Source: Cyanophora paradoxa CCMP329 (Eukaryota; Plantae; Glaucophyta). From it: a stretch of DNA of 64,000 nucleotides. Position 1 is the first letter of the stretch, and each line of letters begins with the position of its first letter. The notes beneath the pieces are model-generated. The model saw only the letters and a program-made list of their open reading frames with translations, was not told where the DNA came from and did not search any database. This document shows, piece by piece, positions 11,593 through 45,100 of this stretch. The stretch spans positions 131,090 to 195,089 of the forward strand of contig QPMI01000220.1 in the NCBI GenBank assembly GCA_004431415.1, in the 5' to 3' direction. The translations under genes were made by a program, and so were the position numbers.

Positions 11593-12282
11593 CGCTGGGT
11601 GCGGGGCTCGTGCGGCCGCTGTCGTACAGCTGCGCCGGCTGGGCGGGAGCTTCGAGCCGCCCTGCCCCGCGCGTACGCGTGCGCGATGACCTTACCTACG
11701 CAGTTGAGTCGCTTGCTGCGCGCTGCAGGTGTCTACGCGTTTGCTGCTGAGGGCCTGCGAGCGAAGGAAAGCTTTCTGCGGCGCGCGGCGCTGCAGCGTC
11801 CCGCGCCATGAAGACAAGGGTCGGGACGGTGTCGCAGGTCACAAAGCAAGCTGGAGGCTTGTCTAACGCCGCAGCGACGGGGCGCGACCCGCGCCGAGCT
11901 CGACTACCGCCGCAGCGACATGGCGCGACGCTGCTGGTATGTCGCGGGACTCCCGCTGCTCTGCAACGCGTCTCTGCAGGTGGTGGCTGAGGCCCACAGG
12001 TGCGATGGAGCCCGAATCCCAGAGACAGCGAACGCGAACGATCCCAGTGCGCGGAAAGCAGCCGACGACGACTCCAGCGAGAGTGGCTACGGCATGCGCA
12101 AATGCTGCGGCTGCGGATCGATCGAAAACCGCTGGCGCCTACGCAGAATGCGCTGTACCCTGACCAAGCGGTCGGCGAACTTGATCCCAGCTGCAGCTGA
12201 GCGGCCGCACGCATCCGCTGCTGACGTATTTGATTTGAGAGCGAGCCCGACCCGCGCTGCGGAACGCCAACGCAAGCAAGCG

Positions 12283-13828: not shown

Positions 13829-14209
13829 CCCCGCCCTGCGCTCTCGAGCTCACCAGAGTTCAAGAAAGTATTGATTGGGTGCGCAATGAGATCGAATGAG
13901 AGAGGCAGCTGCTGGCCGGCGCGCGGCGCGCGGGGACCGAGGGATCCGGATATCAACTCGATCGCGGCGACCCGCCGGTGCCTAGCTATAGGCCAGGATC
14001 TAGATCTAGATTTGGAGATCGCCTCCGGCTCTCGTCTAGATCTGGGCTGCAGCTGTAGCTCGCGCATTGCAAAGTAACTGACACACTCGTATATTCGACA
14101 TCGCTCAGGAAAAGTATTTTGAAACTCTCTGTACATCGCGCGGGCTCAGAGCAGACTCCGGAGAGAAATACATGTACAGTGCACGTGGACTCAGCGGGAG
14201 GCGCGGGCG

Positions 14210-16364: not shown

Positions 16365-16520
16365 GGCTAGAGAACTACTGTCTGTAGAGAACTACTCTCC
16401 AGCCACGCTTGAAGCCACGCCGGACGCCTGCTAGCTGGAGCTCAAAGGCAAGACGCTCGCCGATAGCCGCCGCTTTTTCTTCTTCCGCGGGGTACGGTAC
16501 GCTACCGCTCAGCGATCGAG
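16365..16520. promoter_or_regulatory. Probable compact bidirectional promoter between the PAS gene and the mTERF-like gene
   Basis: Only 156 bp separate the inferred divergent ATGs at 16364 (-) and 16521 (+). Confidence 0.4.
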
Positions 16521-24688: not shown

Positions 24689-24845
24689 CGCGAGGCCGGT
24701 GCCTATTAGAATTCTGCAGTTACTCGAGCTCTGCGAACTGTCGCAAACGTGTACGCGCTATACGTATTGCTTCAGCGGTTAGCGCTACGTATACGAGCTA
24801 GCTAGCAGCTTGCAGGCTAGCGCCTAGTAGCCTAGTAGTAGCTGC

Positions 24846-25427
24846 TTGCGTTTCGCCCCTCCTCTTATACTGCCGATTCCGAGTCTGCACCCGAGCTCTG
24901 CCCCTTTCCTCGTGTCGTCCCCAGTTCCTCAGATTAGTCTTCAGCCGTCCATTGTTTTACCAACTCTACAATCTCGATTCCGTTTAGACACTCCGCCAGC
25001 TTCGACTTTCCCCTCTAGTGGTGTCCTACGTTTCGCCTCTCCTACTGTTCTACCGCCTTTGCCTCCTGCGACTACGTCTTCTAGTTCTGCTGTTAGCTCT
25101 GTCTTGTCGTCTTCGTCTAGATCTTCGTCTTCGACTGTAGTTCCTCGTGCTCGTTCTCCTTATTTGCTGCGTCCCCGTGCTCCTCGTCGTTCTAGTGTGA
25201 CTAGTACTTCTGCATCGACGCCCTTGAGCTCTTCTACTCCTTCTCTTCGTGCTCGTTCTCCTTATCTTTTGCGTTCTTCTGATCGTGTCCCTTCTCGTGA
25301 TCCCTCTTGATTCTGTATATATTTTGTGCTAGTTTACTGTATCTTTGATTTGTGATTGCTTTGTTGTCTTTAATATCACTACCTACGGGGGGTTCGCCCC
25401 ACCGTAGTCTCTCAAAAAAAAAAAAAA
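24846..25427 (+). mobile_element. 5'-truncated non-LTR retrotransposon (LINE) 3' end, copy 1
   Basis: Ends CTACGGGGGGTTCGCCCCACCGTAGTCTCTC followed by A14. 13-bp TSD TAGTAGTAGCTGC at 24833-24845 and 25428-25440. Near-identical to the copy at 32645-33510. Confidence 0.85.
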
Positions 25428-26614
25428 TAGTAGTAGCTGCTAATTTAATTTTGAAGTCGACTCTCACTGTTGCTAGGGATCTAGGAGCGCATTCTGGTCC
25501 AAAATTAATACAGCAATTGGGTTGGGAATTATGTGTTGTGTGATGGCGCAGCGAGGGGGGCAGCGGGCTAGGCGACAGATAGCAGTAATGGAGGTTGCAT
25601 GCTACTGAACACGATACATTAGGCGGCGTCTAGCCCCGTCACCATCGGTTTTCGACCACTGCGGGCGCGGGATTCGCGGCGCGGGATCGGCAAGACAGCT
25701 ACACGAGTGCTAGGGAATCGGCGCGCATAGGTCCTTTTTGCTAGCGGATCCCCGCTGCGCGCCCGCGCGCCAAGGTCCCGCGCGCCCGCTTGCGGAGGGG
25801 GGGGACAGCGATTCCGTCATGCAGTCCGCGCTGCTAGCGCTCTGGTCGCGTTATGCATGCGCGGTACAGCGCAACGATTGCGTTGTGTACCGCTTCGGGT
25901 CCTCCGCGCTGCCGCCGCCGCGCCAGCGCCGGTTTTGGGCTGCCCAAAACCGGGGGGACAGCGTTACGAGGCACCAGCTCCAGCCACACATCGCCCGGTG
26001 TGCGAAACGCTCGAGCGCGTCGCACTCCCCAGGCGCCGCCGCTGTATCTGGCGCCTCCATCTGGCCCCGCTCGCCGCCGCAGTACACGCCGCACATCGCG
26101 GCACATGTACAGCTACTGCTATAGGTCCGTGGCTCACTTTGCATCGTGCTCGGTTCGCTCACCGCGGGCGATCCGGCGCGGCGCATCTGGCGGTTCGTCG
26201 CCCTCGCGCCGCCGCCGCATGTCAATGCGATCCCGTGCGCGCTCCATCACGAGCCGAAAAGCCGGCGCTGAGGTCTGCACACGCCCGCGCCGCCCCCTGC
26301 GCCGAGCGCCGACCGCGGCCTGCCCGCGCTCATTTGCGCAGGGCGATCTCCGTTACCGCGCGTGCTCTGGGGGCACCTCGCCGTCGACGCATGGGACTCA
26401 ATGGCTGCTGGCGTCTTGCGCAGTCAGAGCCAGGATCGCCGACGAGCTGCAGCATGCCGCCCCCATGCCCTGCGCGCGCGCGCTTCGCCACAACCACGTA
26501 TCCGCGGTGCGCGGGCCAGCCGCCTTTGCCCGCTCTTTGATATTCAATCGGAGGGTCTTTTTGAGCGTGGCGTCAGCCACGCTGGACGCCGCTCGCGCAG
26601 GGATCCCGCCCCCC

Positions 26615-27745
26615 GCCGCCCCGCCAACCACGTACCCCGGTACGAGGCCCGGCCCGCGCCCCCGGCCCTGGCTCTGCCGGGCGGGCCTTAGTGCCGCGCC
26701 CGGTGGGCCGCCGAATCGCTTGGGAGACGGCGCTGAACGCTGCTCCCGCAGGGCCCCCGCCCCACACCCCGGCTCTCCGTCGCCCCGCCAACCACGTACC
26801 CCGGTACGAGGCCCGGCCCGCGCCCCCGGCCCTGGCTCTGCCGGGCGGGGCTCTAGTGCCGCGCCCGGAGGGCCGCCGAATCGCTTGGGAGGCGGCGCTG
26901 AACGCTGCTCCCGCAGGGACCCCGCCCCCCGCCTCCCCGCCCCCCCGCCAACCACGTACCCCGGTACGAGGCCCGGCCCGCGCCCCCGGCCCTGGTTCTG
27001 CCTGGCGGGGTCCTAGAACCGCGCCCAGACGGCCGCCGAATCGCTTGGGAGACGGCGCTGAACGCTGCTTCCGCAGGGCCCCCGCCCCCCGCCTCCCCGC
27101 CCCCCCGCCAACCACGTACCCCGGTGCGAGGCCCGGCCCGCGCCCCCGGCCCTGGCTCTGCCAGGCGGGGCCCTAGTACCGCGCCCAGACGGCCGCCAAA
27201 TCGATTTGGAGGCGGCGCTGAACGCTGCTCCCGTAGGGCCCCCGCCCCACACCCCGGCTCTCCGTCGCCCCGCCAACCACGTACCCCGGTACGAGGCCCG
27301 GCCCGCGCCCCCGGCCCTGGCGATGCCTGGAGGGGCCCTAATATCGCGCCCGTAGGGCTGCCGAATCGCTTGGGAGGCGGCGCTGAACGCTGCTCCCGCA
27401 GGGCCCCCGCCCCCCGCCCCCGCCCCCCCGCCAACCACGTACCCCGGTACGAGGCCCGGCCCGCGCCCCCGGCCCTGGCTCTGCCGGGCGGGGCCTTAGT
27501 GCCGCGCCCGGTGGGCCGCCGAATCGCTTGGGAGGCGGCGCTGAACGCTGCTCCCGCAGGGCCCCCGCCCCACACCCCGGCTCTCCGTCGCCCCGCCAAC
27601 CACGTACCCCGGTACGAGGCCCGGCCCCCGCCCCCGGCCCTGGCGCTGCCTGGCGGGGCCCTAGTAACGCGCCCGGAGGGCTGCCGAATCGCTTGGGAGG
27701 CGGCGCTGAACGCGGTTTCCGCAGGGACCCCGCCCCCCGCCCTGG
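26615..27745 (+). repeat. Tandem array of ~160-bp GC-rich units (7 copies) in the left foldback arm
   Basis: The anchor CCAACCACGTACCCCGGT(A/G)CGAGGCCCGGCCC recurs near 26625, 26788, 26948, 27108, 27273, 27431 and 27596. Confidence 0.9.
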
Positions 27746-28489
27746 TTTGGGCGCCCCCAAAACCGGGACTGACGCTGCACGTGTGCGTGTGAGAACATAA
27801 ATTGTAGTGGTCCGACGGTCGCGCTAGCACTACGGTCGGTAAATTGAATCTCGCCGAGTCGAGCTCGCCGTCGAAGTAACCAATATCGATGATCCAGGGC
27901 CCGCACGTCTTAAATGTCAGTAGGGCCTGGCATGCGCGGGCCCCGGGGCTGTCGACTCGCCGAGTCGGCGAGTTAATAATTCCTAGGTACACGCCGTGAC
28001 GTGATCTTCACGCGAGTCATGATCATGATCATGATCAGTGAAAGAGCTGCCAGGCTGTACAGCCATGGCCAGCGCCTGTACAGCTGTACGTACACTGCTG
28101 CCCAGCTCATGATCAGCGGCTGATCATGATCATGACAGCTCATGATTAGCTGTACATGTTTTCAGATTTTCAAGCCTGATATCGATCATGAAGCTCACTT
28201 CAAGGCTTCAGCTGTTTCGAATTCAAGTTTTACATCATGATCAAGAACACGCGTACGTGCACTGCGGCACTAGCTATAGCTATAGTTCTCAGAGTCTGAC
28301 CATTCAATGATTCAAGTGATTAATATATTGATCCGATGATGGATATCCCGGAGAGTCCGATTCAATGATTATAATCCGATGATCATGATCATGATGAAAT
28401 TATTCAATGATATATAATTAATACAATATCATGCATGCGCTATTTGGGTATTTCCCGGCATTGCAATTGCTTAAAATCGCCGCGGTATT

Positions 28490-28720
28490 TTGCGGCATCT
28501 CGCGCCAATCGAATGATTCGCGGCTCTTCGCGGCATCTCGCGGCAACTCGCGGCATTCCGCGGCATCCCGCGGCATCCCGCGGCATCCCGCGGCATCCGC
28601 GGCATCCCGCGGCATCCCGCGGCAACTTGCGGTTTCCGCGAGAAATCGCGGCAATCCAATTATCCGCGATTTATCGCGGCAACTCGCGGCAACTCAGAAC
28701 TCGCGGCAAGTTGCGGCAAT
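28490..28720 (+). repeat. ~10-bp minisatellite (CGGCATCCCG / CGGCAACTCG) in the foldback spacer
   Basis: About 15-20 degenerate copies, bracketed by an 11-bp inverted repeat TATTCAATGAT (28401-28411) / ATCATTGAATA (28719-28729). Confidence 0.8.
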
Positions 28721-29314
28721 CATTGAATAGGCGGCATTGAGGGATCAACGGCAGGCGTTTCATGTTCACTGAGTGAGTGATCATGATCCTGATCATGATC
28801 ATGAGTAAATGATCATGATACAAAAAATCAGCCGCCGGGCCGCTGAGCGCAGCGTTGAAGCGTTGAAGTTTGAAGCTTTAAAGCTTATTTATCACGCACT
28901 GCGGCAGTTCAAGATCAATCAATCATTGAATATTACAAGATATCGATAATCAGATGATGATCAAGATCTAAAGCCCGCGCCGAACCCCATGGCCAGGCCT
29001 AGGCCCGGCCGCGGGCCCTTAAGCTTGCAAGTATGTCGACATCCGACAAGTAAGCTTGCACTCATCCTTGCAATACATAGCCATCCTTGCAAGTATCATA
29101 GTATGTCAACATACTAGGTCGAGAGCTTGGTACAAATTAAAACCTCAATAAACATGTCGCAGTGCCACGCTTCCTGTCGCAGTTCTCGACTAATGGCTAT
29201 GAAAGGCCGCTGCAGGCCGCTGCCACGCAGTGCCACGATGGCTATGAAAGGCCGCTGCATGCGCTCCGCGCGCCCGTCACAGCGTCAGCCCCCGGTTTTG
29301 GGGGCGCCCAAACC

Positions 29315-30370
29315 AGGGCGGGGGCGGGGTCCCTGCGGAAACCGCGTTCAGCGCCGCCTCCCAAGCGATTCGGCAGCCCTCCAGGGGCCGTGGTTGGCGG
29401 GGGGCGGGGAGGCGGGGGCGGGGCCCTGCGGAAGCAGCGTTAGCGCCGTCTCCCAAGCGATTTGGCGGCCGTCTGGGCGCGATACTAGGGCCTCGCCCGG
29501 CAGAGCCAGGGCCGGGGGCGCGGGCCGGGCCTCGTACCGGGGTACGTGGTTGGCGGGGGGGCGGGGGGCGGGGGGCGGGGGCCCTGCGGGAGCAGCGTTC
29601 AGCGCCGCCTCCCAAGCGATTCGGCAGCCCTACGGGCGCGATATTAGGGCCCCTCCAGGCATCGCCAGGGCCGGGGGCGCGGGCCGGGCCTCGTACCGGG
29701 GTACGTGGTTGGCGGGGCGACGGAGAGCCGGGGTGTGGGGCGGGGGCCCTACGGGAGCAGCGTTCAGCGCCGCCTCCAAATCGATTTGGCGGCCGTCTGG
29801 GCGCGGTACTAGGGCCCCGCCTGGCAGAGCCAGGGCCGGGGGCGCGGGCCGGGCCTCGCACCGGGGTACGTGGTTGGCGGGGGGCGGGAGGCGGGGGCGG
29901 GGGCCCTGCGGAAGCAGCGTTCAGCGCCGTCTCCCAAGCGATTCGGCGGCCGTCTGGGCGCGGTTCTAGGACCCCGCCAGGCAGAACCAGGGCCGGGGGC
30001 GCGGGCCGGGCCTCGTACCGGGGTACGTGGTTGGCGGGGGGGCGGGGAGGCGGGGGGCGGGTCCCTGCGGGAGCAGCGTTCAGCGCCGCCTCCCAAGCGA
30101 TTCGGCGGCCCTCCGGGCGCGGCACTAGAGCCCCGCCCGGCAGAGCCAGGGCCGGGGCGCGGGCCGGGCCTCGTACCGGGGTACGTGGTTGGCGGGGCGA
30201 CGGAGAGCCGGGGTGTGGGGCGGGGCCCTGCGGAGCAGCGTTCAGCGCCGCCTCCCAAGCGATTCGGCGCCCACCGGGCGCGGCACTAAGGCCCCGCCCG
30301 GCAGAGCCAGGGCCGGGGCGCGGGCCGGGCCTCGTACCGGGGTACGTGGTTGGCGGGGCGGCGGGGGCGG
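29315..30370 (-). repeat. Tandem array of ~160-bp units (6 full, 1 internally deleted) in the right foldback arm
   Basis: GGTACGTGGTTGGCGG near 29541, 29700, 29865, 30022, 30180 and 30341, plus a partial copy near 29388. Confidence 0.9.
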
Positions 30371-31652
30371 GATCCCTGCGCGAGCGGCGTCCAGCGTGGC
30401 TGACGCCACGCTCAAAAAGACCCTCCGATTGAATATCAAAGAGCGGGCAAAGGCGGCTGGCCCGCGCACCGCGGATACGTGGTTGTGGCGAAGCGCGCGC
30501 GCGCAGGGCATGGAGGCGGCATGCTGCAGCTCGTCGGCGATCCTGGCTCTGACTGCGCAAGACGCCAGCAGCCATTGAGTCCCATGCGTCGACGGCGAGG
30601 TGCCCCAGAGCACGCGCGGTAACGGAGATCGCCCTGCGCAAATGAGCGCGGGCAGGCCGCGGTCGGCGCTCGGCGCAGGGGCGGCGCGGGCGTGTGCAGA
30701 CCTCGGCGCCGGCTTTTCGGCTCGTGATGGAGCGCGCACGGGATCGCGTTGACATGCGGCGGCGGCGCGAGGGCGACGAACCGCCAGATGCGCCGCGCCG
30801 GATCGCCCGCGGTGAGCGAACCGAGCACGATGCAAAGTGAGCCACGGACCTATAGCAGTAGCTGTACATGTGCCGCGATGTGCGGCGTGTACTGCGGCGG
30901 CGAGCGGGGCCAGATGGAGGCGCCAGATATAGCGGCGGCGCCTGGGGAGTGCGACGCGCTCGAGCGTTTCGCACACCGGGCGATGTGTGGCTGGAGCTGG
31001 TGCCTCGTAACGCTGTCCCCCCGGTTTTGGGCAGCCCCAAAACCGGCGCTGGCGCGGCGGCGGCAGCGCGGAGGACCCGAAGCGGTACACAGCGCAATCG
31101 TTGCGCTGTACCGCGCATGCATAACGCGACCAGAGCGCTAGCAGCGCGGACTGCATGACGGAATCGCTGTCCCCCCCTCCGCAAGCGGGCGCGCGGGACC
31201 TTGGCGCGCGGGCGCGCAGCGGGGATCCGCTAGCAAAAAGGACCTATGCGCGCCGATTCCCTAGCACTCGTGTAGCTGTCTTGCCGATCCCGCGCCGCGA
31301 ATCCCGCGCCCGCAGTGGTCGAAAACCGATGGTGACGGGGCTAGACGCCGCCTAATGTATCGTGTTCAGTAGCATGCAACCTCCATTACTGCTATCTGTC
31401 GCCTAGCCCGCTGCCCCCCTCGCTGCGCCATCACACAACACATAATTCCCAACCCAATTGCTGTATTAATTTTGGACCAGAATGCGCTCTAGTGTCCCTG
31501 ATACACTGTCTCTCAGAGTCTAACGAGAATTCCGAAGTTCAACGCGTTGTTCCATGTTCAAGTCGACGAGATCGAGCATGCGGTGCCATCACTGCCATGC
31601 GCATGCCATGCATACTATCATAGTATGATATGGTGCATTATAGCCTAGTAGT

Positions 31653-31767
31653 AGAGTCCAGAGTCCAGACTCCAGAGTCCAGACTCGGCCCGGCGGAGTC
31701 CAGACTCCAGACTCCAGAGTCCAGACTCCAGACTCCAGACTCCGGATCCAGAGTCCAGACTCCAGAC
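31653..31767 (+). repeat. 7-bp minisatellite (TCCAGAS)n
   Basis: About 14 copies of TCCAGAC/TCCAGAG, directly abutting the MITE at 31776. Confidence 0.85.
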
Positions 31768-31775
31768 GTACTGTA

Positions 31776-32034
31776 CCGTAAAACACTTAAGTAATGCGCC
31801 GGTAAGTAATGCGTTTTTGGACCCGGACCCCCAGTACGGTTAATTATGCGCCCCCGAATTAATGCGTTTTGAAGCCTCCTGGCTGCGTGAGGGGGGTACA
31901 TACCGCAGTTTTCTAAGCGCCGGCTTAGCGCTTCGATATTAATGCGGTCCCGAAATAATGCGTTTTGCCAGCGGAAAACGCATTATTTCGGGACCGCATT
32001 ACTTAAGTGCCCGCATTACTTAAGTGTTTTACGG
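31776..32034. mobile_element. 259-bp Tc1/mariner (pogo/Tc2-like) MITE
   Basis: Perfect 23-bp TIR CCGTAAAACACTTAAGTAATGCG / CGCATTACTTAAGTGTTTTACGG. TA on both sides (31774-31775, 32035-32036). Internal TAATGCG repeats. Confidence 0.9.
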
Positions 32035-32452
32035 TACGTCGACTCCGATCCAGCCTGGCACTGGCTGGCAGATCTAGATACTATGATATACCGTATATAG
32101 CAGGATTAACTGAATCAGTACTAGCTATACCGGTACGGTGGACCAGTGGTGAGGCACGGCCGTGGGTAGCCTAGTAGCTCAGCTACTAGCGCTCTGAGCA
32201 GCAGACTGAGCTCTTTCTTCCACACCTACTACTAGGCTGCGAGTACCAATACGGAGGTATATCGGTACATTGACCATACAAGAGACGTTCCCCGGGTTCC
32301 CCTGCAGCCTGGAACTTCCCCCTGGCGGCCTGGGCCTGGCCGGGCGCCGCGCCGCCGCGGCCGCGGCCGGACCTATCCGAGCAAATGTTTTTTTCTCGGG
32401 AAGCGCTCTGAGCTCTTTCTTCCACACCTACTAGTAGCCTAGTAGGCTACTA

Positions 32453-33548
32453 CTGTAGGATGGCTTTTTTAGCCGTACTTTTAAATTGCCGTATATTGCC
32501 GAGACGCCAAATTCGGCAATTTAGAGCCGCGGCAATTCTCAGGGGGTAGGGCTAAACGGCCGCTTTTGTATGGCGCCACAGAAGAAATCCAGAGTTTCGG
32601 CAATTTATCGCCACGGCAATTCCGGTTTTGGCCGAATTCGGCAATTTTTTTTTTTTTTGAGAGACTACGGTGGGGCGAACCCCCCGTAGGTAGTGATATT
32701 AAAGACAACAAAGCAATCACAAATCAAAGATACAGTAAACTAGCACAAAATATATACAGAATCAAGAGGGATCACGAGAAGGGACACGATCAGAAGAACG
32801 CAAAAGATAAGGAGAACGAGCACGAGGAGAAGGAGTAGAAGAGCTCAAGGGCGTCGATGCAGAAGTACTAGTCACACTAGAACGACGAGGAGCACGGGGA
32901 CGCAGCAAATAAGGAGAACGAGCACGAGGAACTACAGTCGAAGACGAAGATCTAGACGAAGACGACAAGACAGAGCTAACAGCAGAACTAGAAGACGTAG
33001 TCGCAGGAGGCAAAGGCGGTAGAACAGTAGGAGAGGCGAAACGTAGGACACCACTAGAGGGGAAAGTCGAAGCTGGCGGAGTGTCTAAACGGAATCGAGA
33101 TTGTAGAGTTGGTAAAACAATGGACGGCTGAAGACTAATCTGAGGAACTGGGGACGACACGAGGAAAGGGGCAGAGCTCGGGTGCAGACTCGGAATCGGC
33201 AGTATAAGAGGAGGGGCGAAACGCAAGCCAGTAGTGACAGGGAAGGCAGACGATGGGGTTGAACCAGGCGGGAGAGGCAAATATAGCGAAGTAGAAGAGA
33301 GAGAAGGGTACACACGAGGAACGTCACCATACACAAAATACTCGCTGCCAAAAACTATACGGTCTGACGGTCGCTGAAGATAAAGAGGCGGAACTGCCTG
33401 AGGGCTAACAGTGAGAGATGGAGGAGGAAGAGGCAGAGCTAACGACAAAGGGAACGGAATCAAAGGTACAGGGAAGGCATGGAATACACGAGGAACTGGA
33501 AGGTGGAGGGGGCAATTTAACTACACGGCAATTTAAGCCATCCTACAG
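32453..33548. mobile_element. Tc1/mariner-like MITE (about 225 bp), interrupted by a LINE insertion
   Basis: 14-bp TIR CTGTAGGATGGCTT (32453) / AAGCCATCCTACAG (33535-33548). TA at left, CA at right. CGGCAATT motifs continue on both sides of the LINE. Confidence 0.75.
32645..33510 (-). mobile_element. 5'-truncated LINE 3' end, copy 2, inserted in the MITE
   Basis: Poly(T) plus GAGAGACTACGGTGGGGCGAACCCCCCGTAG at left. TSD GGCAATTT (32640-32647, 33511-33518). A Pro/Ser-rich reading frame is open from the truncation point to the stop at 32762. Confidence 0.85.
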
Positions 33549-35731
33549 CAGTACCTGATATATACTTATACGCAGTGCTGTCATCATCGCGATGCATTAG
33601 CTATAGTGTGAAATGCCCTGGTAAACGATTCTGATCGCGGGAAGACGTCATGATCGATCATGATGCATAATTGCAAGGGGGGAAAAGAAGACCGAAGGTC
33701 TTCCCCCCCTTGCTTCCCGTTCCCTCGCTTCAGCCAAAAGTTTTCTATGAGGCCGTTTTCGAGGTCCAGTATGCAACGAAATTGTATTCTATTCTTTTTC
33801 CGATTGGATCGGTGGACCGGTCAGCTCTCGACTTTCGAGCGTCGAATTCGAGGGGAAAAACCGGTTTTCGAGGGGAAAACTACCTTCTCTCTAACTCCGG
33901 TCTTCGAATTCCTTGCGCGGTTCTGCATGGAACCAGTTCTCCCTAGCTGTCTGAGTCGGTGCACGGGCCGGCCCGGCCGGGCCCGGCTGCGGGGATTTGC
34001 AATTGGCGGCGGGGAAAACCGGGGGAATCCCGGGGGCCGGGAGGCCCGGGACTCGGGAGGCCCGGGACCCGGATCCATGACGGGACGTCACGGGATCCCC
34101 GGACTCGTGACGGGAGTCACGGCCCCGGTCATGATCATGATCAGGCTTACGGCAATTTTGAAGTTACCGAAGTTACCGAAGTTACCGTACGGTAGGGTTG
34201 GCAGCTTGAAATTTCAAGCCATTGAAATTGCATTGAAATTGAAAATTCAATTCAATTTCAACGCCGCCCGTTGAAATTGCATTAGCCCTGCCAATTCGGG
34301 CGAAGCCTCTTCCGTTGGTCGATGGCCAACTCCCGAAATTATTGTCGGATTTGAACCGGCGTTGTTTTCACTGAACCTCCACGAACCTCCGTGCTGTCCT
34401 CCTGTCGAAGCTGGCGGAGTGTCTAAACGGAATCGAGATTGTAGAGTTGGTAAAACAATGGACGGCTGAAGACTAATCTGAGGAACTGGGGACGACACGA
34501 GGAAAGGGGCAGAGCTCGGGTGCAGACTCGGAATCGGCAGTATAAGAGGAGGGGCGAAACGCAAGCCAGTAGTGACAGGGAAGGCAGACGATGGGGTTGA
34601 ACCAGGCGGGAGAGGCAAATATAGCGAAGTAGAAGAGAGAGAAGGGTACACACGAGGAACGTCACCATACACAAAATACTCGCTGCCAAAAACTATACGG
34701 TCTGACGGTCGCTGAAGATAAAGAGGCGGAACTGCCTGAGGGCTAACAGTGAGAGATGGAGGAGGAAGAGGCAGAGCTAACGACAAAGGGAACGGAATCA
34801 AAGGTACAGGGAAGGCATGGAATACACGAGGAACTGGAAGGTGGAGGGGGCAATTTAACTACACGGCAATTTAAGCCATCCTACAGCAGTACCTGATATA
34901 TACTTATACGCAGTGCTGTCATCATCGCGATGCATTAGCTATAGTGTGAAATGCCCTGGTAAACGATTCTGATCGCGGGAAGACGTCATGATCGATCATG
35001 ATGCATAATTGCAAGGGGGAAAAGAAGACCGAAGGTCTTCCCCCCTTGCTTCCCGTTCCCTCGCTTCAGCCAAAAGTTTTCTATGAGGCCGTTTTCGAGG
35101 TCCAGTATGCAACGAAATTGTATTCTATTCTTTTTCCGATTGGATCGGTGGACCGGTCAGCTCTCGACTTTCGAGCGTCGAATTCGAGGGGAAAAACCGG
35201 TTTTCGAGGGAAAACTACCTTCTCTCTAACTCCGGTCTTCGAATTCCTTGCGCGGTTCTGCATGGAACCAGTTCTCCCTAGCTGTCTGAGTCGGTGCACG
35301 GGCCGGCCCGGCCGGGCCCGGCTGCGGGGATTTGCAATTGGCGGCGGGGAAAACCGGGGGAATCCCGGGGGCCGGGAGGCCCGGGACTCGGGAGGCCCGG
35401 GACCCGGATCCATGACGGGACGTCACGGGATCCCCGGACTCGTGACGGGAGTCACGGCCCCGGTCATGATCATGATCAGGCTTACGGCAATTTTGAAGTT
35501 ACCGAAGTTACCGAAGTTACCGTACGGTAGGGTTGGCAGCTTGAAATTTCAAGCCATTGAAATTGCATTGAAATTGAAAATTCAATTCAATTTCAACGCC
35601 GCCCGTTGAAATTGCATTAGCCCTGCCAATTCGGGCGAAGCCTCTTCCGTTGGTCGATGGCCAACTCCCGAAATTATTGTCGGATTTGAACCGGCGTTGT
35701 TTTCACTGAACCTCCACGAACCTCCGTGCTG
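33066..35731 (+). repeat. Near-perfect 1.33-kb tandem duplication (33066-34396 and 34404-35731) with a 7-nt filler TCCTCCT
   Basis: Both copies start GTCGAAGCTGGCGGAG and end GAACCTCCGTGCTG. The only differences I noticed are three 1-nt homopolymer indels. Confidence 0.9.
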
Positions 35732-38700
35732 ACGTTACATGAATGTAACGTCCGTGTTACGTTATGGTCACGAATTAGTCACGTCCACATCACCGATCAA
35801 ATTTTTCAAATTTTCGATCCCTCTCCCCTGGGCGTCGCGCGAAAATCGAATTTCCCTCCAGGATCAATTCCGGTATTTATACCCCGCCTCGATCGCGAAA
35901 CTCCAAAAAGTGGGACCCGGTCCCGCCCGGTCCCGCGACGAAAGCCCGCCACAGACGCCCCAGAGCAATGCAGAATGAGAGCGGAGGGCGCGCGCACTCC
36001 GGCAACCTCGATTTTGGCCGCCGCCGACGCTCCAGTCCGAAGAGTCGGCCGAAATGTTGATCCTGCCGGTTCCCGCCGGTCCCCCGACGCGCGCATTCGA
36101 TGCGTACTGGCGCGCATAGACATAGCAGGGCCTGCGCACTCCAGATATCCGCTTTTCGGAGCCGGAACAGTGCAGGAAGGTGCCCGATGTCAAAAATTCG
36201 ATCCTGCACAGCCCCGGGCATCTTTCCGCGCGCCCAGGCCGCGGCGCATGCGCGGATCAATAGTATATGCATTTCAGATGTAGAAGAAGCCTTCCGCACG
36301 GTCTCTAAATGCGCCGGGCCGCGAGGACCCAGCCGTCCCCGAAAATTCGATCCTGGACGGACCTGCACATCTTTCCGCGCGCCCTCGCGTCCTCACCCAC
36401 GCCCATCGCGCGCTACAGTATTCATTTGAGATCTAAACGAAGCCTTCCCCAAGCTCTGTGGCAGCGACAGAGCACGAGAACCCAGCCGACGCCAAAGTTT
36501 CGATGCTGGACAGGCCTGCACATATTTCTGTGCGCCCTCGCCTCCCCAGCCCTGGACATCGATCCAGTATGCATCCGAGACTCTGTTTGAGCGATTCATA
36601 AGCCCTGTGCATGCGCCCGGCCGCGAGAATCTCGCCTCTCCCCTCAGCAATCTCCTCTCAATTTCCTCAGAACCTCGAGCTCAACTACAGCTAGCTGATT
36701 GGCAGCACCAATCCTCCCCTCATTATTCTCTCTCAGCTGCAACAATTCCTCCGATTACAGAATTATATTTTCTCAGGAAATCTCCTCTCATTACAACTCC
36801 CCCCATAATTGTATTCCCTCTCGGCAACCCCTCCTCCCCTCTCCCTCCCCCGCCGACCCAGCAACAGCCACAACGGGCCGCGATGAACAAGGGGGGCAGG
36901 AGGTGGGCCGCTGAGGCTTCGCCCGATGTTTGGGACCCGCAGGGGCCCAGGGCTTGTTCGGAAATCCGGGTCGGCGATCGAAATTCCTGTAACTTCCAGG
37001 TTACGTCCGTCCCGCCTGTACGCCCCGAACTCGTCCTGAATCAATTCACGCACTTACCTCGACAGTGACGTCACGCAACTTTCCATCGACTCTGTCTCAT
37101 GGATCTAATCTCGAACTTGTACGCTGCAATCTCGAGAGCTGTCACGAATCAATTTCGATCCTGGCTCCCCTAAGACGACCGCTCTCCCGTGGGCGTCAGC
37201 CGAAAATCGAATTTCTCTCGCGGATCGATTCCGATATTTATACCCCGGTTCGATCGGGAAACTCCAAAAAGTGGGACCCGGTCCCGCCCGGTCCCGCGAC
37301 GAAAGCGTGCGAGGGACGTCCCAGACCGGCACAGAATGAGAGCCGAGGGCGCGCGCACCACCGCAAGCTCGATTCGGGTGCCCTCGACACTGCGTGCAAA
37401 GACTCGGCCGAAACTTTGCAATTGACCCAGCCGGTCCCAGCCAGTCCCGCGACGTGCGCAATCGATGCGTACTAGTGCGCATAGACATAGCAAGGCCTGC
37501 GCACTGCAGGGATCCGCTTTTCGGAGCCGAAACAGCGCAGGAAGCCACCCGGCGGCGAAAATTCGATCCTGCACAGGCCCGGACATCTTTCCGCGCGCCC
37601 ACGCCGCGGCGCATGCGCGGAACAATAGTATAAGCATTTGAGATGGAGGCAAACCCTTCCGCGCGCTTTGCAGATGCGCCGGGCCGCGAGAACCCAGCCG
37701 ACCCCGAAAATTCGATCCTGGACGGACCTGCACATCTTTCCGCGCGCCCTCGCATCCTCACGCATGCCCATCGTTACAGTATTCATTTGAAAGCTTTTCC
37801 AAGCGTTGCGCAAGCTCTCTGGGGGCGAAAGAGCAGAAGAACCCAGCCGACGCTAAATTTTCGATCCTGCACAGGCCTGCACATATTTCCGTGCGCCCTC
37901 GAGCTCGCCTCCGCAGCCCTCCACATTGATAGTATATGCATTCGAGGTACTGTGCAAGAGATTCGCAAGCTCTACGCATGCGCCTGGCCGCGGGAACCTC
38001 GCTCCTCCCCTCAATGATGAGGAGCTCGATCGAGCTTGAGGTGAGATCTAGGGGGGAAATGTATATATATGTATATATATTTCCCTGTAGATCCCCCCTC
38101 TAGCTCGAACTATTTGTTTTCCCCCTCTAGATCTCACCTCGAGCTCAAGCTCCACCGACCAATATATGGCAGCGATGAATAAGAGGCGGCGGCCCGGGGG
38201 GGCTTCGAAAAAGCCCAACCTTTCGCACACGCAAGCTTATAATTAAGAACCCACGGCTCGGCGGTGTACATGTACATGTAGAGGCGTGGCGAGGAGCTGC
38301 CGCAGTGCGACTGCCTGGAGCGGAAGCGCGGCACGCAGCCGCCGCCGGGCCGGGCGCCCTGGCTTGCTGGGCGGAGCTCAGCCTCGGAGCTCGGCGGCCT
38401 GGCGGCATGACTTGGTGGATGGTGCGGAGGCGCCAGGGGCGGCGGCGCGGCTCGCCGGACGGAGCGGAGGCGCTCGGGGCAGCCGCCGGGCGCCATGGCT
38501 CGCCGGGTGGGGCGCAGCCTCGGAGCGCGGCGGCCTGGCGACGTGGCTCAACGGCTTGGCGGACGGAGCGGAGGCCCCAAGGGCGGCGGCGAGGCTCTCA
38601 GGGCGGAGGGTGGCAGCTCGCGGCCGGATGCTTGCAATTGGCGGGCGGGCCATGGCGGAGCAGAGGATCGGAACGCTCGGGCGGGGCGGACCCGCAGGCT

Positions 38701-39156
38701 AGGCATGGAGGCGGCGGATCCGGTCGACGCCTACCGAGCGCTGCCCACTTAGCCTCATTGACGCTAAGACAGACTCTCTGAGACAGGGAGGCTGAGATAG
38801 CAGGCATGCATTGGCAGGGCTTACCACACGTGAGTGTGGGCTTGTTGAAATAGAATATAAAAATAATAAAATATATTGAATTTCTCCGTCTTCGCACCCT
38901 CGAGCTCAGCTTCCCCTTCCCAGCCCCTCCGGCCTTCCCGGGAGCCCTCCCAGCTCGTAAAGAGTCTCAGAGAGTGAGAGTGAAGTCGATTAGAGACAAT
39001 TCAGAGTGAAAGAGACTCTCTGCAGTGCGTGGGGTCTCTGCAAGTGCTGCACTAGTACTGCGGATTGAAATTTCAATTGAATTTTCAAAGCTTTCAAAGG
39101 GTCGACTTTCAGTTTCAACGCCAAATTTTTGAATTTCATGAAATTCACCAACCCTA
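35528..39156. mobile_element. 3.6-kb non-autonomous hAT-type element nested in the rolling-circle element; left end duplicated at 34193
   Basis: TIR TAGGGTTGG / CCAACCCTA. 8-bp TSD CCGTACGG at 35520-35527 and 39157-39164 (also 34185-34192). Clusters of TTGAAATT-like subterminal motifs at both ends. No transposase ORF recognised. Confidence 0.85.
35810..38012 (+). repeat. Two diverged ~0.83-kb direct repeats (period about 1.36 kb), each containing three ~150-bp subunits
   Basis: Shared core AAACTCCAAAAAGTGGGACCCGGTCCCGCCCGGTCCCGCGACGAAAGC at about 35898 and 37259. Subunit anchor AAATTCGATCCTG near 36194/36343/36495 and 37559/37708/37857. Confidence 0.85.
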
Positions 39157-39929
39157 CCGTACGGGAGTCAACGGCCCGGCGGGACCCGGGAAATCGCGAT
39201 CGGGGTCCGGATTCGGGCCCCCAATTTCGGGAATCGATTCCGACGATCCGCGGGCCGCGGCGGTCCCTGTCTCCTCTAGATTTCGGCTTCCTCGCAGTGC
39301 GTCGCGTACGCCTTGCTCTTCGTTGCGCGGTTCTGCATGGAACCACTTCTCTCCACCTGTCAACGTCTCCTCTAGATTTCCGCCTGCAAACTGCTTGCGT
39401 TGCTGCCTGCGCCGCTGCAGCTGATCGCAGCCGAGCACGCCCGGCCGGCCAGATCTAGACCGTACTCTCTTGCTGCGCTTATATCGAGCTTATATCGAGC
39501 TTATATTAATATTGCAGAACCGCGTGTGCCGGCCGAGCACGCCGGCCGGGCCGGGCGCTCGGCGCTCTTGTTGCGATCGATATCGGCACCCGGACAGCAG
39601 ACTAGCTAGTGTGCTGCGCACGACTCGGACGTGGCCGCAGTGGCGCTTGTCCGCTCATTCGGCAACCCGCGTGCGCCCTGCGTTAACGTTGCGCCGCGTG
39701 CACGTGCGTGCGCCCCCGCCGCCTGTCACGTGCACCCGGCCTGGGCATTGCCTCCGGATCCGGACGCGCCGCTGCACGCCGCTTTCCGGTCGTTACGGAT
39801 CCAGCTAACAGGCCAGCTGGCTGCACTGCAGCTTAAGCTTCAGCAGTGTTTGCAACAGCCGGCAGTTCCCTTATTCAGCAGTAGCTCAGCTGCAGGGGAA
39901 AGACCTTCCCTTGGCGAATTTCAGACGAG

Positions 39930-41255
39930 ATGGGACGGACAGCTGCATTGGACCTTGTCCTCGGGCGAGATTTCCTGCCGTCGCACTGCACGCTCTCATC
40001 GTCGTGCACGGGCGGCATTTGTTTACATTGTCCGGACGGAGCCCGTGAACACATCTGCTGGCGCCAGAGCTTGTTTCGTCATGTCCGGCAACACGGTCGC
40101 AGCGCTCGAGTTCGTGCAGTTTCCATCGAGCCGCGCGCACGCTCGCAAAAACGCAGCAGCTAACGCACGTATTCACCGCCACGCAGGGGAGTTCGAAAAC
40201 AGCAATGCGTGCCCAGCCTTCAGTTGGCGATCCGCGAAGCGCGCGTTTGTGTGTCCAAGTGAGCTGGTTTCGCGACTTTTTACAAACTTGAAATTTTTTC
40301 GCGTCATTCAGAGGTTTTTTCAGAATCCGGACCGGGTGTCATCTGCAGGCGAAGACCAGAAAAGTCTTCCCACAGGCTTTTCGTTGCCTGCTCCCCTGGC
40401 GGTATTTTGTCGTTGATTGGTATGCATCTCCCGGCCGCATAAAAAATATTGACGTGCACGCTCAGCTGGACCGTTTCAACTTTCAACTGCCGTACGCTGA
40501 GCCGGCCCGCGAAACCGGCAATCAGGTTCATGCTTTGCCGGCATCGCCGTCTGCAGTGCGTAATGAATCTCAAGAGACGTCGACGCAGGAAGCTTCTTCG
40601 AAGCGCGTCCGCTGCAATGGAAGATCAGCTAATTGTGTATTGTCTTTGAACGAAAATGATCTCAATCACGCTGAGCAAAGCTTTGACTTCCGCATTTCTG
40701 AATCGCGAACTCATGCTCCCGATTCCGGCGACACTGAATGCGTATCCCGCGAAATTGAGCTCCCCGACCGCCCTGGCTTCCCCCCCACGCGCGAGCAAGC
40801 CGTCGCCTTCGCTTTAGCGACCGTCGAAGCACTCGCGGCTGCGCGGCAGCATCGCTTCGTCGTTCGCTTTGTCGGGTGAGCGAAAATTCATTCAAGTGGA
40901 CCGCCCATAGCTGACCTCTGTTCATGATTGCCACGGCAGGCCGGCGATCGAGGACCTCCACATATGCATGGGAGTCCTCAAGCGCCTCCATGACGCCGGC
41001 CTCGCGGATATCGAAATTCAAGACCTTGTCTACCAGATGCGCGCCGGGAGCGGGCAGCGCGACAGCCGCGTGGCTCTGCGGGCGCTCGAGGCGGCGGGCC
41101 GCCTCACCATGCTCTCGCAAGACGGCCCTCTTCATGACCGGCGCCGCTGGCTGCCGCTCACCCCCATGGTCGACTTCCGCCCCGACCCCCTGCAGAAGGC
41201 CTGGATCGCCTATGTTTACGGCGAGCCCTCTGCAGACAGCACCATCATCGTTTAG
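39930..41255 (+). CDS. Protein of about 340 aa with an N-terminal C2H2/BED-like zinc finger; 5 exons; cargo of the rolling-circle element
   Basis: Exons 39930-40113, 40187-40258, 40349-40401, 40466-40875 and 40940-41255 are joined by four phase-compatible GT-AG introns. Motif ICLHCPDGAREHICWRQSLFRHVRQH (CxxC-x16-HxxxH). C-terminal region AVAFALATVEAL...PLQKAWIAYVYG is unassigned. Confidence 0.65.
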
Positions 41256-42159
41256 CCAGCTGTTCAGGGTTAGCGGTAGGCCGTGCGAACACAGTTGATG
41301 CGCAGAGTTTTTTCGCTCCAGAACAATCTTTCATATACAGTGCGCTCAATCTGGCCGTTCATTCAGGCTTTTCTTTATTCGGTTAGATCGCAGCGTCTGC
41401 TTATCAGCCCTTTTCTATTCTTTTCAATCTTTACCTTATCTGCTAATCTGCTAATCTGTCTCTATCTTTACTACTTCAACCTGCCGCGCGCGCTGAGCCG
41501 GGGTCGATCTACATCTGCCCCGTGCATGTTCGTGCCACTACTACTCTTTCATTAGATCCCGGTTCCCCCCTTGCACCCCCGGCGCGCCAAACGCGGCCGG
41601 GCCCCTAGTTAATAATTAACGCATCATGATGACTCAGTGACTCGACCGCCGTGTGCATCATAATGACAGCACTGCTTATACGGAGGAATTCGAACAACCG
41701 ACACACTGACACGTGACAACACTGACAAGTACCCTGATGGTAAGTATTAGTAACACATTCGCTTCTTTTGGTCACACTCTAGAATTCAATCTGAAGTATG
41801 GAGGAGCGTCGCGAGTCGCGACTCGCGACTCGCGATTCGCGAACTTCGGAAGCGGAGCGTCTAGATCTAGAGGCTCGAAAATACTATGATAGTCGAAATT
41901 CAGCCAGATTGAGCAGCAACGCCGACCCGCGTCGCGTCGTCCCCGGGCTGTCGGCCACAAAAAAAAGCCGAGCGAGGAGGCGCCGCTGGCGGAAAACGCC
42001 GAGCATTTCGCCGAGTCGGAGATCTCGAGAGTACTAGTATACGTAGCGGCCGCTCGGACCTCGCGACTCGAGTCGCGAGTCGCGAGCGAAGCGACGTCGA
42101 CAACGAGCGACCACAGCCCTCTTGTGCCCGCCCCGCGCTGTGGCGCCGGCTAGGACAGC

Positions 42160-45100
42160 CTAGGAGACGGCGCCCCACTTGGGCCCGGTGCGCTCGGCGG
42201 GGGCGAGGGGCTCGATGGGCCGCTTGTGCACGAGCTCCGGCTTCTTGTCGAGCACCACCTCCGACTTGCGCGTGTACTGCCTGCGCCCCCGCCGCTCGCC
42301 AACGGCCCCCGGGGAGGCGGGCATCGGGTAGGGAGGGGCCGAGCTCACCTGAAGTCGACGTCCGACACGTTGAGCGCCGGGTCGCTCTCCCGGAACTTGA
42401 CCGTCGTCCCCTGTACCCCCGAAGAGCCCGCGAGGGGCCCCTGCGCGCCCCGCCGGCGTCAGGGCGCGCGCAGCGCGGGTGCCCGATCGCGGCGCACGTC
42501 GTCGGGGGGCGGCTCCTGCAGGAACGTCGACGTCGGGGGCACGGGCGCCGGCCCGCCCCGGCCCTTGAACGTCAGCGCCTTCTGCGGCGGCTGTGAGCCG
42601 TGGGGCGGGCGGGATAAAGCGCGGGGGGCGCGCCTTCTGCGGCGGGTCCTTCCTCATGTCCTCGGCCCGCTCCAGGGGGTGAACTTTGTCCCGGTTCACT
42701 CCTGTCGCGGGCTCAGGAACGAGGATGAAAAGGGGCAGAAGCGGGGCGGGCGGACCGCGCCAGTGGAAGCTCATGCGGGCCTGGTCGACGACGACCTTGG
42801 CGCGCCAGTCGTCGATCTCCTTCTGCCGCTGCGCCTGCGCCCGCGGAGACGCGTCGGGGGCGGGCAAGCGTTGCCGCGGGTAGCTCGAGGGCGCACGGCC
42901 ATCTCCTGGACGAGGCCGGCGCCGGCGAGGTGGACGCTCTTGAAGAACTCGCCCTCCTTCTCGAAGAGCTGCGGCTTCACCGGCACCGTGTCGAACCCGG
43001 GCCTCTCGTCCTCGCTGCGGGGGGCGTTAGCGGGCGGGGCAAGGCGGGGGCGCAGGGGGGCGGGGCGGGGCGCACGGGGGCCGCGTGTCGCGCCCGCGGT
43101 CGCCGAGGGCGGAGCCGCCGGGCTCGCCGCCCCACGGCTCCCGCAGGTCCGCGACCCGCTGCTCGCTCGGCTTCTTCGGGTGCACGTTCTGCGCCCCGGG
43201 CTCGCCCTTTGGGGGGTACACGAATCCCTCCGGCGTCACGAAGCGCGCCCGCGTCGCCGCGAGCTCCTTCGCCGCGATGTCCGAGTCGTTGACCTGCCGG
43301 GCTCCGCACCCTCAGCGAAGGGCGCCCGCTCGGCGCCTGTACCCCGCGCACGAGGGGTACGGAGAGGGAGAGGTAACGGTCGGAGAAGGTGTAGAACGCG
43401 TCCCTGGCCTCGGGCTTGCCGAGCTCGCGCTGCATGGCCGCCAGCTGCAGCTGGCTGTACTCCAGCTTCTGCCCGCTGTACACGTACACCGGCACGCCCT
43501 CGGGCACCGGGTGCGTGTCCGCGTAGTGCCGCGGCGGGCCCTCCACCGCTTTCTGCGCGGGCCGTGTGAGCCTCCCGGCGAGGCAGGAAGGAAAATGGCC
43601 CGGCCGGGATTCGAACCCTGTTCTCCTCAATGTGGTCGACGTACTGCCTGTGCTTGAGGCCCTCGAGGAACCTGCGGGCGGCGGGGCGGGGCGGGGCGGG
43701 GCGGTCAGGCCAGAGGGTCTCCGAGCGGGCGGCCCCGGCCGCCGCGCGGGCGGACGGGAGGGTACAAGCGCACTCGGGGTTGACGTGCTCGGTGGCGCCC
43801 TTGCGGAAGGTGCGGCGGCGCCCGCCCTGCTCCGCGTCCAGCTCCGCCTGCGACGCCGTGTACTGCGCGGAGCGGGCGCACCGCGTCAGCGAGGAGGGGA
43901 GGAGAGGGGTACAGGTCCCGGGCGAAGGGGAAGGAGGGATACCAGCGTGGAGGCGTCGACCTCCTTGATCCCCTCGACGTCCTCGGGGACCTGAGGGGGG
44001 AGGAAATGAGGGGTACGTCTCTTAGAAGGGTACGGGGGTACGGAGCGCGCCATGACGTCGCCGAACTTCTTGTCGAGGGCGGCGAGGGCGTCGACGCTGG
44101 GGAAGATCTCCATGCGCGCCACGTCCCGCATCCGCATCATCTTCCGCAGCTGCGCGCCGCGAGGCGAGGGCCGGTCGGGAGGGGCGGGGCGGGGCGGGCG
44201 GGCGCGGGGGCGGGAGGGGCGGCGCGGGGCGCACGTCCATGAGCTTGTACATGGCGTCGATACACTCCGGGGCGATCTGGGGCGCGCAAGGGGCGCGCCT
44301 CGGCGCCCGCCCGGGGGGGAAGGGGCGCGGGCGGGGCAGACCTTGCCGCGGACGTAGGCGGCCGACTCGGCGAGGATGCCCGACAGCGCCCGCCGCAGCT
44401 GCCCCACCCGTCAGAGAGGGCGGAGGGCGAAGAAGGGCGGGGGCGGAGGGGGCGGGGAGGGAACGGCGCGCGTGCCTTGATGCGCTTGATCTGGAGGTCG
44501 AGGGCGGCGTAGGCGCGGGCCTCGAAGAGGCAGTTCTGGTTGCAGAGGACGCGGAAGTTCTCGTTGTTCGACTCCGTCCTGCCCGCCACGCCGCCTCAGC
44601 CTCGGCCGGGCCCGGGCGGGCGGGCGGGGGACCTCGTCATCTCGTCGATGAGGGCGGCCATGCCACGGGAGGCGAGGCCCTCCACCACGAACTCCCGCAC
44701 CTCGCTGTCGATCACCTGGGGGAGGGGAGGGGATCAAGCGGGGGAGGGGGGGGGGCTGGGGGAGGAGGGCGGGCCTGGAAGCCCGTGAGGATGTCGAGGT
44801 CGGGGTCGGCCCGCTGCTCCTCGCTCAGCCGGTACGTCGCCAGCCGCCGCGCGTTCGCCTGCCGGGGGGAGTGAGCCACGCATTCGCAGGCGCTGCTTCG
44901 TAGATCGGGGCGGGGCGGGCCTGCTCGGAGCCGTCGAGGGCGAGGGCGGCGGCGTTGACGCGGTTGATGCAGCCCATGCACTTGTGCAGCATCGGCGTGT
45001 TCTCGTACCTGCCCGGGGGGCCGCCTCAGGGTCTCATCTAGAGGCGAGGCCTCTAAAGCCCGGGCGCGCGCGCGCACCGGAAGATGATGACGCAGCGGGT

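Follow-up and report, generated by a model that had tools for sequence, protein, structure and literature searches.

The question raised by positions 33671–41608 of a 64-kb window of the Cyanophora paradoxa CCMP329 genome (contig QPMI01000220.1, positions 131,090 to 195,089; all coordinates below are those of this window) is what kind of mobile element lies there, and whether it carries a gene. The original prediction, made from the sequence, described a rolling-circle transposon with hybrid ends and an apparently intact spliced zinc-finger gene as its cargo. We find that the locus is probably a non-autonomous Helitron2/Helentron-type (HLE2, HINE/DINE-1-like) rolling-circle transposon, originally 2,963 bp long, and that it is ordinary though neatly nested mobile DNA, probably an ordinary member of a known group rather than a hybrid. 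The stretch was found in 20 public runs of C. paradoxa, the eukaryotic DNA of the window is rich in GC, at 51 to 77% per 2-kb bin, and an Rfam search of the whole 64 kb returned no match. All proteins that match the window belong to C. paradoxa (EukProt EP00741). Features of this element, the arms of the element that surrounds it and a tandem duplication are given on the + strand; the left target-site duplication and an inner insertion are given without strand.

The 5′ edge of the element reads A|TTGCAAGGGGGGAA at 33670|33671, in the context ...GCATAA|TTGCAAGGGGGGAAAAGAAGACCGAAGGTCTTCCCCCCCTTGC, and its 3′ end is GCCCCTAG, finishing at 41608 and followed by TTAATAATTAAC, which places CTAG|T at 41605–41608|41609. 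The 5′ terminus (33671–33713) consists of T(T), a 13-nt repeat and a hairpin. The repeat, TGCAAGGGGGGAA (33672–33684), pairs at 13 of 13 positions with 41563–41575, where the reverse complement TTCCCCCCTTGCA lies 33 nt from the 3′ end. This 5′ repeat also pairs with a neighbouring inverted copy to form a 41-nt hairpin (33673–33713; −17.9 kcal/mol with DNA parameters), whose arms GCAAGGGGGG ... CCCCCCCTTGC contain the inner stem GAAGACC/GGTCTTC and whose 5′ side lies within the left repeat. At the other end, a GC hairpin follows the right repeat at 41578–41601 (−11.6 kcal/mol, also with DNA parameters). With up to two mismatches allowed, all four occurrences of the terminal 14-mer in the window lie at these ends (0.44 occurrences expected), and no further copy of either end was found elsewhere in the 64 kb. 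No target-site duplication surrounds the element, and its joined flanks are self-complementary. The A|...CTAG|T ends with asymmetric 13-bp inverted repeats (33671–33684 and 41563–41608), the folding of the 5′ repeat on its neighbour, and the missing target-site duplication with self-complementary flanks are thus all present as first described. Read from this one copy, the insertion site can be written ...ATAA-T|TGCAAGG...CTAG|T-TAAT or, equally, A|TT...CTAG|T.

The 5′ end recurs at 35009, there with one G fewer. The two copies (33678–33710 versus 35015–35045) differ only in the lengths of G, C and other homopolymer runs. Such differences are typical of long-read consensus errors; the length of the 5′ G run is uncertain, and pairing of the second copy is either 13/13 or 12/13.

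These termini correspond to published HLE2 layouts. HLE2 elements have terminal inverted repeats of 12–16 nt, with a stem-loop following the right-hand one, and insert between T and T (HELIANO 2024, PMC11417382), and DINE-1/HINE elements have 13-bp subterminal inverted repeats, a 5′ inverted repeat nested in the subterminal repeat, a 3′ stem-loop, a TT target and two to five T at the boundaries (Thomas et al. 2014, PMC4067079). In the Cyanophora element the inverted repeats match over 13 of 13 nt, a stem-loop follows the right one (41578–41601), and the 5′ inverted repeat at 33673–33713 falls within the DINE-1/HINE spacing of 3–22 nt from the subterminal repeat, with its 5′ side nested. Assigning the first T to the flank turns the site into T|T and makes base 1 the start of the inverted repeat, as in the published HLE2 layout. 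The element thus shares with HINEs and DINE-1 its asymmetric 13-nt subterminal repeats, nested 5′ inverted repeat, 3′ stem-loop, T-rich boundaries and absence of a target-site duplication, as well as high-copy termini and no coding capacity for RepHel; it differs from them in its glaucophyte host, its CTAG 3′ end and an orphan open reading frame (ORF) tail in its 3′ part. The tandem arrays in its middle are not "central repeats" of the element itself; they belong to a later hAT-like insertion. The assignment to a non-autonomous rolling-circle element of the Helentron/DINE-1 kind, already made in the original prediction, is therefore supported by the ends, the folds and the published layouts. 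With canonical Helitrons (HLE1) the element shares a CTRR-type end (here CTAG) preceded at about 8 nt by a 3′ hairpin, the lack of a target-site duplication and possibly the A|T site; however, HLE1 elements start with TC and lack terminal inverted repeats, whereas the Cyanophora element starts with TT or TG and has the 13-nt inverted repeat.

As the two ways of writing the insertion site are equally valid, the locus could instead be a proto-Helentron-like hybrid that combines subterminal repeats of the HLE2 type with a true TT start, a CTAG end and A|T insertion. The letters A|TT...CTAG|T equal those of proto-Helentron-Pi, with its 5′ TT, 3′ CTAG and A-T site (PMC4067079), and five of six RNA contigs from other copies keep the T at 41609 before they diverge. 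However, T|TGCAAGG...CTAG|T is just as good a reading of one copy and starts the inverted repeat at element base 1, HLE2 elements reportedly carry two to five T at their boundaries (PMC4067079), and a 2024 re-analysis has re-filed the proto-Helentron, with its short inverted repeats, inside HLE2 and found it only in Phytophthora (PMC11417382). Proto-Helentron-Pi of Phytophthora infestans resembles the Cyanophora element in its 5′ TT, 3′ CTAG, possible A|T site and short inverted repeats, but it is an autonomous element of about 14 kb with RepHel, SET and TIR-domain genes and has its 5′ stem-loop upstream of the left repeat, whereas the Cyanophora element is 3 kb long, has no RepHel and carries its stem-loop in the canonical 3′ position. 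Proto-Helentrons are defined by a RepHel that falls with those of Helentrons yet lacks the endonuclease domain, and by A|T insertion confirmed at empty sites. We consider the hybrid reading unlikely, and with the HLE2 layout fitting and the proto-Helentron itself now placed in HLE2, the proposal of a hybrid-ended intermediate is not supported.

The edges of the HLE2-type element are bracketed independently by the DNA into which it inserted. A terminal inverted repeat, CAGTGCTGTCATCAT, lies at 33573–33587, 98 bases outside the 5′ end, and its partner at 41660–41674 is complementary at 14 of 15 nt. The same 8-mer, CTTATACG, abuts both outer repeats (33565–33572 and 41675–41682; the left copy is duplicated again at 34903–34910), and in a scan of 33–42.2 kb for exact 8-bp duplications beside inverted repeats this was the only convincing outer pair. 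Joined, the left arm (33573–33670, with a second copy at 34911–35008) and the right arm (41609–41674, forming with the right CTTATACG a feature at 41609–41682 that is single copy in the contigs) make 165 bp that form a single long hairpin (−33.3 kcal/mol); the insertion site falls in the AT-rich loop at its apex. Judged by this signature of 8-bp target-site duplication, short inverted repeats and hairpin, the flanks appear to be a small non-autonomous hAT-type element, a miniature inverted-repeat transposable element (MITE). Since the symmetry of its arms (ATCATGATGC / GCATCATGAT) continues to within 10–15 nt of 33671 and 41608, everything between these positions is inserted DNA, and the outer hAT-like element serves as a built-in "empty site" that brackets both edges. 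The self-complementarity of the flanks had been recognised in the original prediction; its cause, a hAT-like element with a target duplication of its own, had been missed. Like hAT MITEs, both this flanking element and the one that interrupts the HLE2-type element have 8-bp duplications and short inverted repeats, which start with CAG... and TAG.... No transposase is present in either, both are at best non-autonomous, and their hAT membership is by duplication length and end motifs only.

Public contigs locate the 3′ boundary of the repeat family. Logan contigs from two DNA and two RNA runs were aligned to positions 36501–42500 (6,000 letters) at a likeness of at least 80%; in run X1 the depth of single-copy contigs is about 100 (88–110). 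Summed depth is about 500 at 40301–40700, where one unique contig covers 40266–40578 without differences, and rises to 3,000 at 40701–40900, 11,000–17,000 at 40901–41500 and 41,000 at 41501–41700, before it drops to 292 at 41701–41900. Throughout the 3′ terminal region (41256–41608, with the right 13-nt repeat, the GC hairpin and CTAG) it stands at 110–410 times single copy up to the element end. Six RNA contigs match up to 41609–41611, beyond which they pass into other flanks for over 250 letters; a unique contig of depth 97 covers 41584–42000 without differences, and the hAT-like right arm past 41608 is single copy. These results show that the repeat family, with its several hundred copies, has its end at 41608–41611, at CTAG together with the next T. 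The expectation that similarity should end at CTAG is borne out for the 3′ end by this divergence of contigs from other copies at 41609–41611.

This boundary also bears on a reading without any rolling-circle element, in which 33573–41674 is one hAT-type element and the 13-mers are subterminal repeats that bind its transposase. An 8-bp duplication and 15-nt inverted repeats do enclose everything, and each 13-mer is 99 nt away from the nearer end. This interpretation, with CAGTGCTGTCAT repeats as the bounds of one hAT element, was the one favoured first, and it was demoted by the contig boundary at 41608–41611: as the repeat stops there rather than at 41674 and 41609–41682 is single copy, the hAT repeats are not the edge of the high-copy unit. 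In addition, the two subterminal stretches of 100 nt have no other colinear similarity, the 3′ hairpin and the asymmetric placement of the repeats fit HLE2 and not hAT, and none of the ORFs tested showed a hAT transposase domain. We therefore regard this reading as very improbable indeed.

Inside the HLE2-type element, an inner hAT-like insertion occupies 35528–39156 (3.6 kb), as recognised by its end motifs, subterminal inverted repeats and 8-bp flanks. Its ends are TAGGGTTGG...CCAACCCTA, its imperfect subterminal inverted repeats span about 100 nt, with an alignment that beats 300 of 300 shuffles, and CCGTACGG flanks it at 35520–35527 and 39157–39164. As CCGTACGG is a palindrome, target duplication and repeat extension are indistinguishable here. 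The internal hAT insertion named in the original prediction is thus real; a Pfam search of the ORFs of 35528–39156 gave no family, hence no hAT transposase domain. The insertion contains two units of about 1.35 kb, 35815–36646 and 37176–38013, which are 82% identical and include sub-repeats of about 150 bp. The sub-repeats reach a summed depth of about 1,600–2,400 times single copy across 37501–37900 (about 2,400 times at 37501–37700). Since some contigs go back by about 1,340–1,350 nt on the 1.35-kb units, these units form tandem arrays elsewhere. A GC-rich segment at 38286–38720 has 48/144-nt periodic repeats, and many RNA contigs end there; its summed depth is about 280 and 9 times single copy in the two DNA runs, respectively, and it is probably low-complexity sequence common to many loci.

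The second disturbance is a tandem duplication (33066–35731), which is present in the assembly as proposed: 33066–34396 equals 34404–35731 at 99.8% identity, with differences only in homopolymer lengths. The duplicated unit (1.34 kb) takes in outside flank and the left arm of the MITE, together with 519 bp from the 5′ end of the element and the initial 204 bp of the inner insertion. Between the units lies a 7-nt filler, TCCTCCT (34397–34403), which would argue for real end joining and against an assembly artefact. Because the unit includes sequence of the inner insertion, the duplication is the youngest event. The nesting therefore shows a clear order of four events at a single locus: the outer hAT-like element, insertion of the HLE2-type element in its loop, the inner hAT-like insertion, and the tandem duplication. 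What is left once the last two are subtracted is 35009–35527 (the 5′ body in the copy that adjoins the remainder, ending in the left CCGTACGG) plus 39165–41608, together 2,963 bp, in agreement with the earlier estimate of about 3 kb.

The right breakpoint of the duplication lies directly before a hairpin with a perfect 9-bp stem, ACGTTACAT-GA-ATGTAACGT, within 35732–35751; this hairpin may have provoked the break or may mark the start of a further nested element.

The 2,963 bp were not necessarily ever one unit, since the two ends could come from different elements of the same or related families, with the intervening 6.6–7.9 kb a composite that never existed as a single 3-kb element. Related Helentron families can have near-identical subterminal inverted repeats (PMC4067079), a 43-nt piece of the 5′ region recurs at 39319–39361, and a contig connects 39445 with 41398. 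The body also varies strongly in copy number, from 5 to 400 times single copy: the middle body (39165–40756) is a mosaic of low- and mid-copy segments whose summed depths range between 5 and 180 times single copy. Against a composite, non-autonomous Helitron families usually have uneven copy number, as their members share mainly their ends. The outer hAT-like element has a single interruption, with exactly one 5′ end against one of its arms and exactly one 3′ end against the other, and there is no additional 13-mer copy or terminal hairpin inside. A composite is for us quite unlikely, and we retain the reading as a single HLE2-type element. Its 5′ region is also multi-copy in the genome, since loose contig ends before 39319 carry letters of 35215–35243.

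We next consider the gene said to be carried by this element. A chain of five exons with GT-AG introns and 344 codons can indeed be drawn (exon 1, 39930–40113; exon 2, 40187–40258; exon 3, 40349–40401; exon 4, 40466–40875; exon 5, 40940–41255). When exons 1, 2, 4 and 5 were searched singly against Pfam (E ≤ 10; exon 3, with about 17 codons, fell below the minimum of 20 residues), neither zf-C2H2 nor zf-BED nor any other family was found, save one meaningless sub-threshold match, and a word search with exon 1 gave no homologue. Exon 1 has the spacing Cx2Cx16Hx3H, yet its GC content at third codon positions (GC3) is 0.61 against an overall GC of 0.60. GC3 likewise stays near local GC in exon 2 (0.65), exon 3 (0.53) and the first 97 codons of exon 4 (0.49), and it is 0.74 in the last 39 codons of exon 4 and 0.83 in exon 5. 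Copy number changes along the model, from about 30 times single copy over exons 1–2 to 5 times over exon 3 and early exon 4 and 30–170 times at the end. A different model has been deposited here: P0020 (tig00000949_g5753.t1), with two exons and 114 aa, joins 40081–40109, in another frame, to 40940–41255 and is encoded exactly by the window.

The RNA runs lead in the same direction. They cover the neighbouring host gene, where one contig skips a 68-nt intron (42280–42347), so the runs are real RNA. No RNA contig lies on 39501–40900, which holds exons 1–4. RNA contigs that cross 40961 carry a 6-nt deletion typical of other copies and hence do not come from the copy in the window. With no domain match, a GC3 like that of non-coding DNA from exon 1 to the early part of exon 4, mixed copy number and a different deposited model, an apparently intact spliced zinc-finger gene cannot be upheld. 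Coding-like behaviour is limited to 40757–41255, and the upstream "exons" are most likely chance open frames.

The coding-like part, recognised by family protein matches and GC3, is an orphan ORF remnant of a family present only in Cyanophora. It comprises the end of exon 4 (40757–40875), a 64-nt GT-AG intron (40876–40939) and exon 5 including the stop (40940–41255). Twenty-one Cyanophora gene models (EukProt EP00741) match it at 70–100% identity, and all span the junction VVRFVG|PAIEDLH. Family proteins match only 40713–41270 of the window, and the part common to the models begins at 40713–40757. In the fullest model, P0008 (235 aa), about 95 extra N-terminal residues match nowhere in the window. 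The window copy therefore appears to have lost the N-terminal 95 or so codons of the ORF, and we infer that the last ~145 codons of the supposed cargo gene are what is left of an orphan ORF, its truncated tail, which is carried along with the 3′ part of this repeat family.

Searches for relatives of this family stayed within Cyanophora. A profile search of 1.84 billion protein representatives returned only seven short clusters, all from Cyanophora, with no RepHel-fused or foreign relative. In Pfam the family gave sub-threshold ACT-like matches only, a profile search of PDB sequences gave E > 1, and an ESM Atlas search gave scores of up to 0.79, below the useful range. An AlphaFold2 model of the family had a mean pLDDT (predicted local distance difference test score) of 37, a quality that does not permit a fold search. 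Scanning metagenomes for the 3′ terminus and for the family member P0001 gave no match. Two further ideas were abandoned: that the N-terminus of the family (CYVMSRP...GGLVV) corresponds to the end of a Pif1 helicase, as no long relative occurs among the 1.84 billion representatives, and a link between the N-terminus of P0019 and 39960–40050 of the window, which covers 8 residues only and was not used. The deposited models P0014 and P0013, from other loci, fuse the orphan tail to unrelated N-termini, that of P0014 being weakly F-box-like; these fusions are probably annotation chimeras from scattered fragments of the 3′ repeat.

The orphan ORF has host-like GC3 and a conserved intron and is covered by RNA contigs. 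That it is a genuine accessory gene of a glaucophyte Helitron2 lineage, or that insertion is directed to the single-stranded loop of palindromic MITEs, strikes us as quite improbable; if true, the ORF (about 235 aa in its fullest copies) could be a DNA- or RepHel-binding factor spread on non-autonomous copies.

As the HLE2-type element appears to encode no RepHel, it would, going by what is established for Helitron-like elements, have been moved in trans by a putative RepHel transposase encoded by an autonomous HLE2 element at another genomic site. Taking the terminal repeats and hairpins as its cues for where to start and stop, such a RepHel would nick the 5′ end and peel off a single strand as far as the 3′ hairpin/CTAG signal; integration would then proceed without duplication at a T|T (or A|T) step.

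Several points weigh against this assignment to HLE2. The CTAG 3′ end and the A before TT are the letters of the proto-Helentron, and A|T insertion is possible. The spacing of exactly 99 nt between each 13-mer and the corresponding end of the outer hAT-like element would fit hAT subterminal repeats; in our reading the equality is a coincidence of arm lengths, 99 being 66 + 33. Only one copy was read, and since the contigs covered 36501–42500 the 5′ edge of the family rests on one locus. An autonomous partner with the same termini is presumed, none having been identified in this analysis, and contigs cannot prove that RNA is absent over exons 1–4.

The locus thus offers one well-delimited non-autonomous Helitron2-type element in a glaucophyte, a group for which, as for Cyanophora, a literature search found no published description of a Helitron. 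It reveals neither a new type of terminus nor a zinc-finger gene borne by a transposon, and the biological point that remains is the orphan ORF family riding with the 3′ part of the repeat.

Three minor observations concern the surroundings of the outer element. RNA contigs of the neighbouring host gene (feature 41648–42440), with its intron removed, end at 41648 and 41684, within or at the margin of the hAT-like right arm, which thus seems to supply the end of this host transcript. To the left, a 585-bp inverted pair (24844–25428 and 32644–33228, 99.8% identical) lies outside a foldback at 25475–31499; by its sequence, a palindromic structure appears to span about 24844–33228, with an extra 1.1 kb (31500–32643) in its right arm, and the pair loses its similarity at 33228, within the tandemly duplicated unit. 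Finally, a 43-nt inverted repeat (32448–32490 and 33511–33553, 79% complementary) bounds a purine-rich stretch of 1.1 kb immediately left of the outer element, and this stretch (32448–33553) may be another small element with terminal inverted repeats.

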